A stretch of 62,152 bases of DNA, filler included, from Klebsormidium nitens (lineage: Eukaryota; Plantae; Klebsormidiophyceae): the NCBI GenBank assembly GCA_000708835.1. It is 7 parts of 7 records of this genome, joined end to end, with 100 filler letters (N's around TTAATTAATTAA, not from the genome) between each part and the next. Parts side by side here need not be neighbours in the genome. Positions count along the whole stretch, not along the records: positions 30,017 to 34,101 come from DF238532.1; positions 34,202 to 40,507 come from DF237801.1; 5 more parts are not named here. The stretch is one strand, 5' to 3'. The notes under the pieces were generated by a model. It was not told the DNA's origin. It ran no database searches and saw nothing but the letters and a program-made list of their open reading frames with translations. Within the stretch, counting starts at the first letter, position 1. The number at the start of each line of letters is the position of its first letter. Of the stretch, positions 30,017 to 34,254 are shown one piece after another. The position numbers were made by a program, and so were the translations under genes.

Positions 30017-30017
30017 A

Positions 30018-31289
30018 TCCGTGACCAACATCAACACGATCGAATGCACGAACTACATGAATCCTCCGGCTCCTCGAGTGGTGGTGAGCAAGATGATAGG
30101 CAAGCCGGGCGAAGCCCGCTCGTTCGACTGTGGGCCCGCGGGCCTCAGCGGAATGCTCCTGAAAGCGTCGGCCGTGGTGGATTCCATCCAACCCATCTGC
30201 GGCACGGACCTGGGCACGAAGGACGTCAACGCGTACATCAAAGGCTACCCCTGGTCCACCGGTGCTTCCATCGGCGGACCTAACGCGCCCCAGTTCGCTC
30301 AATGGTGTGCAGCCGGCAGTCGACCGGCCGGCGACAAGGCTCTCATAACATCCATCTCAGGAGGCCCGGCGAACAACGGCAACCACCCTAATGATCTCAG
30401 CAAGTTGTCGTTCACGTGCAAAGACTTTGCGGAAATCGATGCCGTGAAGAACGATCCAGAGCGGACGGCGGACGTCTGCATCGGGACGGATCCGCTGACG
30501 CCCGAACTGTCCGGCGCGATCGACTGCAATGGTTCGATGAAGGGTTACTGCACCGGTACTCGGGCCTGGTCCAACAAGTGCAACATCTACGTCGGCAAGG
30601 TTCCGACGCAAGCCGCCGATCAAGACAGAGCGAAGATGGACCACTGCTCGACGGGTCAGAACTACAAGAGTCAGGTCTGTCAAGACTTTTGCCTCGCCGG
30701 CGGAGTCGACATGTACGTCCCCGGCGGCCCGGGAAGGCCCGCCTTCAAAGATCAGTGTAACGTGCTCTATGCGAACAAGTGCAAGGGGGACTCTTCGGAC
30801 CTGTGCTCCTGCGTCAACAAACCCCGTCTAGAAGACTGGGGGGCGGACCAGACGTACCAAGCGGTGATGAGCGCCGTGAACGGAACGGCAGGAGCGAATC
30901 GCAATCCCCAGTGTTACTTCGGACCTTGCAAGGAAAGAGGCTACAAGGCCGTCAGCTTCTCGAAAGCTGGATGCCCGAGCTGCTTGAACAGCATCACCGT
31001 CTCAGGAACCGACGGAGGAGTCGCTAGCCTGGGCAGTGCCGTCCAGTCCTGCCTCGCCAGCGATGCGCCGGCACCAGCCGCCGCTCCCTCTCCCTCCAAG
31101 AGCGGCACGTCCTCCGGTTCCTCGGGGTCCCTTCAGACGCCAGCGCCCTCTCCACCCAAGGGGTGGCTGTATGCTTTGCTCATCCTCATCGCCGTCGTCC
31201 TCGTCGCAGCGCTGCTCGAGTGGGTCTTCACAGGCGACAAACCCACTCCGAGACCCGCAGCTTCCACCATGAACCATGCGCCGACCTAG
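30018..31289 (+). CDS. Intronless cysteine-rich membrane protein resembling the NCLDV entry-fusion family A16/G9/J5 (5'-partial)
   Basis: Frame is open from the contig edge. Cysteine pattern CQDFC..C...Y..KC.....LCSC...NPQCYFGPC.....CPSC..I, then a Pro/Ser linker and a single C-terminal TM helix (WLYALLILIAVVLVAALLEWVF). Family assigned from pattern recall, not a search. Confidence 0.6.
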   Translation, partial: SVTNINTIECTNYMNPPAPRVVVSKMIGKPGEARSFDCGPAGLSGMLLKASAVVDSIQPICGTDLGTKDVNAYIKGYPWSTGASIGGPNAPQFAQWCAAGSRPAGDKALITSISGGPANNGNHPNDLSKLSFTCKDFAEIDAVKNDPERTADVCIGTDPLTPELSGAIDCNGSMKGYCTGTRAWSNKCNIYVGKVPTQAADQDRAKMDHCSTGQNYKSQVCQDFCLAGGVDMYVPGGPGRPAFKDQCNVLYANKCKGDSSDLCSCVNKPRLEDWGADQTYQAVMSAVNGTAGANRNPQCYFGPCKERGYKAVSFSKAGCPSCLNSITVSGTDGGVASLGSAVQSCLASDAPAPAAAPSPSKSGTSSGSSGSLQTPAPSPPKGWLYALLILIAVVLVAALLEWVFTGDKPTPRPAASTMNHAPT

Positions 31290-31330
31290 CCGGTCTTCGG
31301 GAAAATAATCTGATCTTCTTTCCGAACGGT

Positions 31331-31522
31331 ATGTCGGAACCCTTACCGCGATCGAGCGATTCGGGCGACCAGACCTCGAATCACAACTCCGACGCTAGGG
31401 CTAAGAAACCGCCACCGAGTACTCATCCGCCAAAGAAGAACATGGATGCAGGCGTTCCGCCCCCGAAACCCATCGAACGTTCCAGCAGCTGGTTCCGTTA
31501 CCTCACCGGATCTTGGTTCTAA
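31331..31522 (+). CDS. Small ORF (63 aa), possibly a viral gene cut by the IS607 insertion
   Basis: MSEPLPRSS...SSSWFRYLTGSWF*. The frame can be continued into the right flank of the element (see findings). Confidence 0.3.
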   Translation: MSEPLPRSSDSGDQTSNHNSDARAKKPPPSTHPPKKNMDAGVPPPKPIERSSSWFRYLTGSWF

Positions 31523-31827
31523 AAGTTGTGGAACTACTCCCTATGCATTTAGAGTCTGCGTAAGTCTGCGTCCCAAAGAATGTTTGATGTCGAGAAGCAC
31601 CGATGGGTATTGACGTTTACGCCATTTGTCCAGACACGCTTATTCAGAAGAGCATGGAATCCAGGATGTTAGAAGAGCTTGGCTGGACGGAACCCAGAGG
31701 TCCTTGCTGCTGCCAGCTTTGCTTCTCGATCCTACTCAATCCTTCTCGAAACCTATCGAACTTCGGTCACGTCACACCTTATTAAGACCGAACAACATTG
31801 CTGAGGTCACCCTGCCATCGACGCGCC

Positions 31828-31835
31828 TATAAAAG
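31828..31835 (+). promoter_or_regulatory. TATA box upstream of tnpA
   Basis: TATAAAAG starts 58 nt before the ATG at 31886, followed by a pyrimidine-rich leader. Confidence 0.5.
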
Positions 31836-31885
31836 CCCGGATTACAAACATTCTCTCTCATTTCCAAAGATGCTCCCTCCACACA

Positions 31886-32836
31886 ATGTTCCTCGGCTTC
31901 AAGGCCGCCAAGGCCCACTTCGGGGTCTCCTCTTGCACACTCCGAAGGTGGGCCAATGAAGCCAAGGTCGTCTCCAAGCGCACCGCTGGCAACCACAGGG
32001 TCTTCCTCGCCGCCACCTCCCAAGCGGAAGAAGGCCGGGAACGCCTCGCCTACTGCCGTGTCAGCAGCTCCAAGCAGCGCGACGACCTGCAGCGCCAGAA
32101 GGACTTTCTCGCTCACCAATACCCCGGACACCGCATTGTCACGGACGTGGGCTCCGGCATCAACTTCAAGAGACCCGGACTGCTATCCCTTCTGGAACGA
32201 GTCTTGCAAGGCCGAGTATCGCAAGTGGTGGTTACCAGCAAAGACCGCCTGTGCCGCTTCGCGTTCGAGCTCCTTCAATGGATCTGCCTCCGCCAAGGGA
32301 CACAGATCCTGGTTCTCGATTCAGGAGACAAGTCACCAAACGAGGAGTGCACAGAGGACATCCTGGCCATCATGCAAGTATTCGCTGGTAGATGGAACGG
32401 CAAGAGGCGCTACAAGCAGGGAGGCGCGCGCAAGCGGGGCTCCCCCGACGGCAGTTCAGGTGGCTCGGGCGTGCCCGACTGTGTGCAGGAAGATCCGGGC
32501 CTTCCCGACGGCGCAGCAGCGCAACATACTCCGGAGGCTGGTGGGCGGGTGCAGGAAGCTGTACAACGAGGCGGTCTCCATGATCCGGGATCGCAGGCTG
32601 CCGTTCGCGAGCGAGGCGGAGTTCCGGGAGGCCGAGCGAGAGCGAGGGCTCCGGCTCGCCGAGCGGAAGCGCAAGGCCAGAAGCGGCCAAGAGGAGGAGA
32701 GCGGGCGAGGGGAGGGGGCGGGAGCGTACAAGGGCACGAAGCACCCGTGGCTCGACAAGGTGTACGTGAAGAACTTTCTGGTCCCGGAGAAGAGTGCATT
32801 CGTGCGGGCGAACCCGTACCTGAAGGACGTGCCTAA
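31886..32836 (+). CDS. tnpA: IS607 TnpA serine recombinase (N-terminal MerR-like HTH plus catalytic domain) with a long C-terminal run-on
   Basis: HFGVSSCTLRRWANE..RTAGNHR (HTH), AYCRVSSSKQRDDLQRQ (catalytic Ser), DVGSGINFKRPGL, KDRLCRFAFEL, EDILAIMQVF..GKRRYK. Confidence 0.92.
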   Translation: MFLGFKAAKAHFGVSSCTLRRWANEAKVVSKRTAGNHRVFLAATSQAEEGRERLAYCRVSSSKQRDDLQRQKDFLAHQYPGHRIVTDVGSGINFKRPGLLSLLERVLQGRVSQVVVTSKDRLCRFAFELLQWICLRQGTQILVLDSGDKSPNEECTEDILAIMQVFAGRWNGKRRYKQGGARKRGSPDGSSGGSGVPDCVQEDPGLPDGAAAQHTPEAGGRVQEAVQRGGLHDPGSQAAVRERGGVPGGRARARAPARRAEAQGQKRPRGGERARGGGGSVQGHEAPVARQGVREELSGPGEECIRAGEPVPEGRA

Positions 32837-33929
32837 GGAGACGAGGCAGCAGGCGGTGGAAGACGCGATCGAGGCGTGCAAGGCGGCCCTGAGCAACGTG
32901 CGAGCGGGCAACATCGAGCACTTCAGCCTGGGGTTCCGGAAGAAGAAGGACCCGCGGTGGTCGCTGGCAGTGGCGTTCAATGCGGTTTCAGGCAGCAGGT
33001 TCTGGCCGCGCAAGATCAAGGAGTTCGGGCAGCTGCGGGTGGCGGAGCCAGGGCACCTGAGGCCCCACTACGACAGGGAGCTGAAGGTCTCCAAAGACGA
33101 GCTGGGCCGCTACTGGATGCTGGTCCTGAGTGCGAAGGGCCCCGCCAGGGGCACGAACGAGGCTGCGGCCAGGGTGGAGGCGCTGGCAGAGTCGACCCGC
33201 GAGAACCAAGCGGGGGACCGGCCCGTAGCTGCCATCGACCCCGGCGTGCGGACTCGGCACTCGATCTACATGACGGACGGCAGGGTGGTGGACGTAGGCG
33301 GGGGAGACATCGCCCGTGTGGTGCGGCTCTGCCGCCACGTAGACCGCTGCATCTCCGCGCTGAAGAAGGGAGAATTCTGTGTGTCACGGAAGCACGTGAG
33401 GCGTGAGCCTGGTGCGTCTACTATGCGGCTGTTCGACCACTACCGCCCGGCCAAGAAGGAGCAGGGGGCGCATGTCGTCCCGCTAGACGGGCGTAGCAGG
33501 GAGCACATTCGGGCGAAGATGCACCGGCTGAGGGCAAAGGTACAGGCGCTGAAGGACGAGGTAGACAATCAGACGGTTGCATACCTGGTAAGGGAGTGCA
33601 AGGCGGTGCTCCTCCCGCCGTTCGACACGCATCGCATGGCGACGCGGCTGAATCACAAGACGGCACGGGCGATGATGCAGTGGAGGCACGGGGCATTCAA
33701 AGCCAAGCTGTTGGAGCGGGCAGCACGGATGGGCGTGCAGGTGATGGTCGTTCCGGAGGCGTACACGAGCAAGACATGTGGGGCGTGTGGGTGGCTGCAC
33801 CCAAGCTTGGGAGGGGCGAAGACGTTCCAGTGCAGGAGCTGTGGAGTGGAGTTAGACCGGGACCACAACGGTGCCCGTAATATCTTCCTGAGAGCAATTC
33901 GGTCTTGGGGAGTAGATAGCCCCGAATGA
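31956..33929 (+). CDS. tnpB: Fanzor2/TnpB RNA-guided nuclease; recognisable core starts ~32485, true start uncertain
   Basis: KIRAFPT..Q...L......R.LYN N-terminus, RuvC-I AIDPG, Pro at the canonical Glu position (VLLPPF), alternative Glu in VPEAYTSKTC, zinc finger CGAC...CRSC, RuvC-III DRDHNGARNI. No stops or frameshifts. Confidence 0.93.
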   Translation: MKPRSSPSAPLATTGSSSPPPPKRKKAGNASPTAVSAAPSSATTCSARRTFSLTNTPDTALSRTWAPASTSRDPDCYPFWNESCKAEYRKWWLPAKTACAASRSSSFNGSASAKGHRSWFSIQETSHQTRSAQRTSWPSCKYSLVDGTARGATSREARASGAPPTAVQVARACPTVCRKIRAFPTAQQRNILRRLVGGCRKLYNEAVSMIRDRRLPFASEAEFREAERERGLRLAERKRKARSGQEEESGRGEGAGAYKGTKHPWLDKVYVKNFLVPEKSAFVRANPYLKDVPKETRQQAVEDAIEACKAALSNVRAGNIEHFSLGFRKKKDPRWSLAVAFNAVSGSRFWPRKIKEFGQLRVAEPGHLRPHYDRELKVSKDELGRYWMLVLSAKGPARGTNEAAARVEALAESTRENQAGDRPVAAIDPGVRTRHSIYMTDGRVVDVGGGDIARVVRLCRHVDRCISALKKGEFCVSRKHVRREPGASTMRLFDHYRPAKKEQGAHVVPLDGRSREHIRAKMHRLRAKVQALKDEVDNQTVAYLVRECKAVLLPPFDTHRMATRLNHKTARAMMQWRHGAFKAKLLERAARMGVQVMVVPEAYTSKTCGACGWLHPSLGGAKTFQCRSCGVELDRDHNGARNIFLRAIRSWGVDSPE

Positions 33930-34084
33930 ACCTGGCGCTGCCGGGGACGAGTCGGAGAGATGGCTCCTAGTCCCAGAAGTATGAGGGGCTTGGTACTAGG
34001 CTAGAGGTAGGAGATAGCACGGTACACAGAAACTGAGTAGGATTACTTAAGTTTCAACCATCGGATCTGTGGCAGACGGAAGTG
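33930..34084 (+). ncRNA. Predicted omegaRNA (scaffold to 34064, guide ~34065-34084)
   Basis: 11-bp bulged hairpin 34029-34055; stems cctagt/actagg (33966-33971 with 33995-34000) and gggac/gtccc (33944-33948 with 33970-33974); gatgg 33959-33963 complementary to ccatc 34058-34062 just before GG. The 5' end may lie inside tnpB. Confidence 0.6.
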
Positions 34085-34254
34085 TAGTCTGTCCATATCA
34101 TNNNNNNNNNNNNNNNNNNNNNNNNNNNNNNNNNNNNNNNNNNNNTTAATTAATTAANNNNNNNNNNNNNNNNNNNNNNNNNNNNNNNNNNNNNNNNNNN
34201 NTGATCCCATTGTATATTATATGCGACTTTTCAGAAGAAAAATATAACAGATTA

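Follow-up and report, generated by a model that had tools for sequence, protein, structure and literature searches.

A predicted omegaRNA scaffold with a covarying, guide-adjacent pseudoknot at the right end of an IS607-type element encoding a Fanzor2-like nuclease in a Klebsormidium nitens assembly

IS607 crossover occurs at GG dinucleotides, and a GG at both junctions without duplicated bases is the signature of these elements (PMC10711439). In ISXfa1 of Xylella fastidiosa (Yoon et al. 2023, PMC10711439), a serine-recombinase TnpA crosses over at a GG at both ends, and an RNA scaffold of about 150 nt with several stem-loops contains a fixed GG, with the guide directly after it; a fixed flanking base is part of the scaffold. 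In IS607 TnpB and in ISDra2, five guide-flanking nucleotides pair with an apical loop, and in ISXfa1 this guide-adjacent 5-nt pseudoknot is required (PMC10711439). The Fanzor2 of Acanthamoeba polyphaga mimivirus (ApmFz2, L79; 9B0L; PMC11832414, PMC10530073) is IS607-associated and linked to giant viruses, combines a rearranged RuvC glutamate with an N-terminal extension, and has a 205-nt scaffold whose structure shows a guide-adjacent pseudoknot at positions −4 to 0 as the RNA core (PMC11832414), plus a pseudotriplex. In both ISXfa1 and ApmFz2, a GGG TAM coincides with the element start (PMC10711439; PMC10530073; PMC11832414). ISDra2 TnpB of Deinococcus radiodurans (8H1J, 8EXA) also takes its omegaRNA from the element 3′ end, with a pseudoknot core and a guide from the flank, but belongs to the IS200/IS605 family, is moved as single-stranded DNA by a Y1 transposase, and has a scaffold ending at the element boundary, a TTGAT TAM, and a canonical RuvC glutamate. 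KnFNuc (Jiang et al. 2023, PMC10530073) is an RNA-guided Fanzor reported under the species name of the assembly analyzed here, but is a Fanzor1 with a TTA TAM and five genomic copies; since it is a different element, the data published for it do not apply to the IS607-associated, Fanzor2-like locus described below.

This locus lies on a 4085-bp Klebsormidium nitens assembly scaffold, which makes up positions 30017 to 34101 of the window (i.e., the whole stretch of DNA analyzed, 62,152 nt). The assembly scaffold contains three ORFs, namely a left-flank ORF (30021–31289), tnpA, and a TnpB-family ORF (Table 1). Judged from its sequence and that of its relatives, the segment from 31699 to 34064 constitutes an intact transposon of the IS607 type that carries tnpA, for a serine recombinase, and a gene for a Fanzor2-like nuclease, and its last ∼135 nt (33931–34064) very probably encode the omegaRNA (reRNA) scaffold of that nuclease, a reading to which we assign a probability of roughly 0.85. 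Like ISXfa1, the element has a serine-recombinase TnpA, a GG at both ends, a fixed GG in the predicted RNA with the predicted guide directly after it, several stem-loops with a 5-nt apical-loop pseudoknot, and a predicted TAM ending in GG, here (A/G)GG with more upstream purines. ISXfa1 is, however, bacterial, lacks the long N-terminal extension, and is unrelated in sequence, and its pseudoknot was proven by mutation and rescue, whereas covariation is the evidence for that of the K. nitens element. The IS607 and giant virus associations, the rearranged glutamate, the N-terminal extension, and the guide-adjacent pseudoknot are shared with ApmFz2, but a single-sequence search aligns only the C-terminal ∼90 residues of the two proteins (E 1.4e-10), and in contrast to the mimivirus RNA, the predicted scaffold is ∼135 nt long, with its pseudoknot at positions −6 to −2 and the terminal GG unpaired.

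Table 1. Features of the element and its junctions, in window coordinates
Feature	Coordinates	Strand	Remarks
Predicted TAM, AGAGG	31696–31700	+	Three left-flank purines plus the GG core
Left-end non-coding region	31701–31885	+	Conserved inward from the junction in L001, L005, L007, L006, and L004
tnpA	31886–32455	+	IS607-type serine recombinase; frame open to 32836
Fanzor2-like (TnpB-family) nuclease ORF	31956–33929	+	657 aa; TnpB core from ∼32470
Stem-loop 0	33931–33944	+	First scaffold hairpin, directly 3′ of the stop codon
Stem-loop 1	33954–33967	+	GGAG/CUCC stem; 6-nt loop A-GAUGG
Pseudoknot 5′ arm, GAUGG	33959–33963	+	In the loop of stem-loop 1
Stem-loop 2	33969–33990	+	Two pairs changed on both sides among the eight close copies
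Stem-loop 3	33991–34028	+	Long interrupted stem; one pair changed on both sides; 98.8% of cells paired
Stem-loop 4	34029–34055	+	Present in minimum-free-energy and centroid folds; 98.9% of cells paired
Pseudoknot 3′ arm, CCAUC	34058–34062	+	Two bases before the scaffold end
GG crossover core	34063–34064	+	Element right end and last two scaffold bases; invariant in 14 copies
Predicted guide, ATCTGTGGCAGACGGAAGTG	34065–34084	+	Flanking host DNA; begins at the first position where copies differ

Giant-virus-like metagenome contigs yielded 13 further copies, with protein identities of 36 to 98%; relatives recovered by word search stood at 98, 80, 74, and 68% identity, with a second tier at 36 to 43%. 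The comparisons comprise eight close copies (the window copy with L001, L005, L007, L006, L004, L002, and L003), five distant copies (L008, L009, L010, L091, and L092), and one solo RNA copy, for a total of 14. Exact and degenerate DNA patterns of the right end gave no match in the viral_contigs and metagenome_contigs collections (which do not include the samples holding the close copies), and protein-pattern scans of viral_contigs returned no relative. A protein scan of the metagenome yielded 80 distant loci at 23 to 35% identity, in none of which was the motif pair GAGAURG...CYAUCGG found in a credible place, so that these loci added nothing on the RNA. The solo copy (L002:1733–1878) comprises the omegaRNA/right end and shares its contig with the full element, which begins ∼2 kb further downstream; it matches the main L002 copy at 94% identity and carries GAUAG:CUAUC and the GG. 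Blastn of the window copy against L002 detected no second match to the element genes beside it, and this solo stretch may represent either a remnant or a non-autonomous element.

In hand-registered right junctions, C(C/U)AU(C/U)GG was terminal in 14 of 14 copies, and the sequence was unrelated from the next base onward. The right end is accordingly placed at 34064, because the flanks are unrelated straight after the shared GG in all 14. A first-pass annotation of this DNA had proposed the same end and predicted that similarity among copies would fall off past CCATCGG, and the multi-copy alignment bore this out, showing neither identity past 34064 nor earlier divergence. By blastn, the right boundary fell at 34064 to 34067 in all seven other close copies and the left boundary at 31696 to 31699 in the five copies with the left end retained. 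No left end could be assigned in L002, L003, or the distant copies; the left-junction set comprises six insertions, each of which reads flank-RRR-GG-TC(C/G)TTGC, with the GG at 31699 to 31700. GG was thus present at 6/6 left and 14/14 right junctions with no duplicated bases beyond it, as expected of IS607 elements; the GG-core background on which the first-pass annotation drew is likewise published (PMC10711439). Mobility is indicated by copies 87 to 97% identical within six left flanks and eight right flanks that all differ. Gene order is also that of IS607 elements, with the tnpB-family gene 3′ of tnpA on the same strand and an identical layout in 12 of 12 related loci. Close to the left end, within the element, CTTCTCGA occurs twice as an exact direct repeat at a spacing of 20 nt (31722–31729 and 31742–31749); the two repeats may be TnpA binding sites.

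The tnpA product matches Pfam Resolvase (1.5e-19) at residues 54 to 175, C-terminal to a MerR-like HTH (MerR/MerR_1, residues 7–40) that is weak and below the curated Pfam cut-offs, and tnpA homologues were present in 12/12 related loci. The nuclease ORF matches HTH_OrfB_IS605 and Cas12f1-like_TNB in Pfam and carries IDPGVR, LLPPFD in place of the canonical glutamate, VPEAYTSKTC with the alternative glutamate, DRDHNGARNI, and a CxxC...CxxC zinc finger. These correspond to the published signatures of the rearranged active site (DPG, lost canonical glutamate, alternative glutamate, and DRD; PMC10711439), and alignment to Cas12f shows the shifted RuvC glutamate. Across family alignments the D, P, G, and E residues are invariant, the DRD aspartates invariant or nearly so, and the zinc finger conserved. 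Searched as a family profile, the nuclease has the mimivirus Fanzor2 ApmFz2 (9B0L) as its best solved relative (E 8e-33). Based on these conserved motifs and this relative, the nuclease is classed by sequence as Fanzor2-like and as a member of the rearranged-site clade.

Folding of positions 33930 to 34064 as a single sequence gave a z-score of −1.65, with 7 of 200 shuffles folding equally well; evidence for structure from one sequence is therefore weak and exceeds chance only through comparison. Among the eight close copies, four nested stems together with the pseudoknot were 98.1% paired, and six pairs were changed on both sides. Neither the covariation score nor the percentage of pairing was reached by any of 500 shuffles, and slid controls were 32 to 42% paired. 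Conservation of the non-coding 145 nt matched that of the ORF, with identities of 77.6% versus 74.3% for L002 and 73.6% versus 71.8% for L003. A conserved and structured non-coding stretch thus extends from the nuclease stop codon to the right end, as is characteristic of an omegaRNA. The strong hairpin noted in the first-pass annotation corresponds to stem-loop 4, in which compensatory pairs occur among copies, with two pairs changed on both sides (C-G to U-A and U-A to C-G). In stem-loop 1, the 3-bp stem adjoining the loop covaries, appearing as GAG/CUC, GUG/CAC, GGG/CCC, GCG/CGC, and GGU/ACC. No pair of stem-loop 0 changed on both sides, and three of six changed on one side only. When the distant copies were folded with both pseudoknot arms held open, the same order of elements was recovered (hairpin, loop stem, tetraloop hairpin, variable multi-stem region, terminal stem, 3′ arm, GG) from sequences that are no longer alignable: a hairpin of unrelated sequence takes the place of stem-loop 0 in L008, L009, L010, L091, and L092, a tetraloop hairpin stands at the position of stem-loop 2, and the stem-loop 3 region is variable and expanded, with a length that differs between clades. 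Copies differ in how far the 5′ arm lies from the end (104–201 nt). Rfam (E up to 1) gave no family in 31300 to 34101, with no group I intron or known RNA, and a scan of 33700 to 34101 with sigma-70 promoter and terminator models, which are not appropriate for this host, found neither. In L007, L004, and L003, stop codons interrupt the tnpA and/or nuclease frame, yet the omegaRNA stems and pseudoknot are intact; by sequence, the RNA end is preserved at least as well as the genes in these copies.

Pairing of the loop of stem-loop 1 with bases next to the guide, as the first-pass annotation had proposed for GATGG and CCATC, was complete (5/5) in 14 of 14 copies, including the solo copy; the positions it gave for both arms, the GG, and ATCTGTGGCAGACGGAAGTG are those of Table 1, and its premise that TnpB-type scaffolds close with such a pseudoknot is found in the literature (PMC10711439; PMC11832414). 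A ∼5-bp pseudoknot between an apical loop and guide-adjacent bases is a further characteristic of omegaRNAs. Pair 4 is G:C in nine copies and A:U in five, position 33962 being A rather than G exactly where 34059 is U rather than C. The arms read GAUGG:CCAUC in the clade of the window copy, L003, L009, and L091; GAUAG:CUAUC in L008, L010, L092, and the solo L002 copy; and GAUAG:CUAUU in L002. As the pair-4 states are interleaved on a maximum-likelihood tree of the nuclease, the G:C to A:U switch occurred at least two times independently. Covariation concerns one pair of the five; the remaining four show no change except a single G:U and are uninformative either way. In the MAFFT alignment, the 5′ arm of L008 is one column off register, which understates pairing, and the hand-registered table was used instead. 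A third GAUAG-like motif, in stem-loop 3 (34012–34016), was considered as an alternative and rejected, its complementarity being only 4/5 in the clade of the window copy.

Two other accounts of the conserved 3′ region were weighed against an omegaRNA with a loop pseudoknot. It could be a DNA right end for TnpA only, with no functional RNA and coincidental complementarity. Indeed, the crossover site must lie within the terminal C(C/U)AU(C/U)GG, these bases must also serve as the TnpA recombination site so that their conservation is partly at the DNA level, and in a single sequence the 5-nt complementarity does not reach significance by itself, GATGG arising by chance in 23% of scaffold shuffles. 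DNA binding does not, however, predict coordinated changes 100 to 200 nt apart (the repeated switch at pair 4), nor compensatory changes in four other stems, nor a conserved order of hairpins built from unrelated sequences, and we consider this account very improbable. The other account retains an RNA but pairs CCAUCGG with CCGAAUG at the Fanzor stop codon (33922–33928), giving a nested closing helix in place of the loop pseudoknot. This helix is the consensus that RNAalifold itself returned for the eight close copies, and both C-to-U changes in L002 retain pairing within it as G:U. It was nevertheless rejected, with little chance of being correct: none of its pairs is changed on both sides, L003 breaks one pair, the stop-codon bases of L008 and L009 are complementary to the 3′ end over just two to three pairs, and the G-to-A change at 33962 is left unexplained.

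A third account accepts the architecture but takes this copy for an inert relic, or for a piece of viral DNA within the Klebsormidium assembly, that forms no RNP there. The assembly scaffold is only 4085 bp long, the closest relatives (L001, L005, L007, and L006; 91–97% DNA identity) lie on giant-virus-like contigs, and the sister copies L007, L004, and L003 carry stop codons. In the window copy, on the other hand, neither tnpA nor the 657-aa Fanzor frame is interrupted, the catalytic residues are retained, and the scaffold differs from that of L001 at just ∼4 of 146 positions; an inert copy is thus a serious possibility, albeit one that we hold to be rather unlikely. The contigs of the relatives bear giant-virus-type genes (Capsid_NCLDV, Pox_VLTF3, mRNA_triPase, and TBP), with some matches faint. 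Because the element is 91 to 97% identical to copies on contigs with such markers, the short Klebsormidium scaffold may be viral or an endogenized viral fragment rather than ordinary algal nuclear DNA. The product of the left-flank ORF (30021–31289) is rich in cysteine, with a Pro/Ser-rich linker and a membrane anchor at its C-terminus; it matched no Pfam entry, and the fetched loci contained no homologue.

For the omegaRNA reading, the junctions also predict a guide and a TAM. The guide would begin at 34065, because identity among copies ends right after the GG, in agreement with the first-pass proposal that the scaffold ends at 34064 and the guide follows. Its length is assumed to be ∼20 nt; guides of 20 to 21 nt were used for ISXfa1 and ApmFz2 (PMC10711439; PMC10530073). 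On the left, positions −1 to −3 of the flank are purines in 18 of 18 cases over six insertions (AGA, GAA, AGA, AGA, GGA, and GAG), and the base adjoining the left GG is A five times and G once. From the purines that precede GG at these six junctions and the GGG TAMs of ISXfa1 and ApmFz2, we infer a TAM of (A/G)GG, possibly with more purines upstream, which fits the first-pass expectation of a TAM ending in GG. Searches for empty sites and guide targets returned no match, so that no unoccupied site was available from which to read the TAM. At 34065 and the equivalent positions in 13 other copies, the flank (guide) starts with A, T, or C and never with G, perhaps owing to a target preference or to biased resolution of a GGG site.

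The 5′ part of the nuclease gene overlaps tnpA. No in-frame ATG lies near the start of the conserved TnpB core, and the frame is open back to the ATG at 31956, 70 nt after the ATG of tnpA (the Fanzor ORF starts either 4 or 70 nt after it), such that the first ∼175 nuclease codons sit in the +1 frame of tnpA. Beside the window, the overlap was seen in L001, L002, L005, L006, L008 to L010, L091, and L092. Over 540 nt of tnpA in nine copies from five lineages, the +1 frame is free of stops and the +2 frame contains 2 to 12; when synonymous codons of tnpA were shuffled, a stop-free +1 frame arose in 0.04 to 5% of trials per lineage. Third-position divergence is lower in tnpA than in the nuclease core, and at the +1-frame motifs YPFW and SWFS, nucleotides vary only at the wobble positions of the nuclease frame while the TnpA residue shifts among L, I, and V. 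Distant metagenome loci with an upstream tnpA (among L011–L090) showed the same +1 relation in 47 of 50 cases, and in 46 of those 47, the nuclease ORF overlaps tnpA by 299 to 680 nt, with many beginning ATGnATG. The family profile aligns SWFS (window 32307–32318) with N82-S83-W84-Y85 of 9B0L, a weak match (domain i-Evalue 0.0016) that is collinear with the strong core match; N82 and S83 of the mimivirus Fanzor2 are reported to contact the omegaRNA pseudoknot (PMC11832414). An AlphaFold2 model of the 657-aa ORF from a 10-sequence alignment had pLDDT below 50 for residues 1 to 173, which is neutral with respect to a folded N-terminal domain. The pattern has the look of genuine dual coding, in which tnpA and the N-terminal region of the Fanzor share the same DNA, and it appears likely that in this clade the Fanzor gene is overprinted on tnpA, adding a ∼175-aa N-terminal region with an NLS-like basic run and invariant YPFW, SWFS, and VDG. 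No description of such a tnpA/nuclease overlap was found in the searchable literature.

A different gene model is given by GenBank entry GAQ93499.1 ("putative Resolvase [Klebsormidium nitens]", 633 aa), which falls in the same 90% cluster as the window protein P0001 and whose two exons read as translations of the window. It implies a GT...AG intron (32347–32488) that fuses TnpA residues 1 to 153 to the nuclease; given that the overlapping frame is conserved, an artefact of annotation is the probable source of this spliced model. In homology searches, the TnpA and Fanzor parts served as separate queries.

The model proposed for this element starts from its observed boundaries, the GG at both junctions, the conserved and covarying stems and pseudoknot, and the intact catalytic motifs; to these are added transcription and processing of the RNA, a guide length, a TAM, and cleavage, all of which we infer. 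Five stem-loops would form in a transcript that continues beyond the 3′ end of the Fanzor gene, and the GAUGG loop of stem-loop 1 would pair with CCAUC to form the pseudoknot core that is held by TnpB and Fanzor2 proteins. The GG used by the TnpA serine recombinase for crossover would be the last part of the scaffold, and the guide would consist of the next ∼20 nt of flank (ATCTGTGGCAGACGGAAGTG). Once the element is excised, the empty site would have the order purines-GG-guide target (...CCCAGAGGATCTGTGG...), and the RNP would recognize it through the (A/G)GG TAM and guide pairing and then cut, which would favor re-copying of the element.

The system follows rules already published in 2023 to 2024, and what is new is this member. 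The analysis yields a testable omegaRNA scaffold, guide position, and TAM prediction for an uncharacterized GC-rich Fanzor2 lineage from algal or giant virus sequence, and the natural G:C to A:U switch in the pseudoknot constitutes a built-in compensatory-mutation series. It also indicates that the published IS607/Fanzor2 rules (i.e., the GG core, the loop-to-3′-end pseudoknot, and the guide start after the GG) suffice, given comparison of a handful of copies, for such RNAs to be read from sequence alone. If the overlap of tnpA and the nuclease gene is confirmed, it would explain the apparent missing start codon of these Fanzors and their misannotation by gene callers and in GenBank, and would couple expression of transposase and nuclease; the transposase and the pseudoknot-reading part of the nuclease would then be encoded by the same DNA, with both proteins probably arising by alternative initiation on one mRNA.
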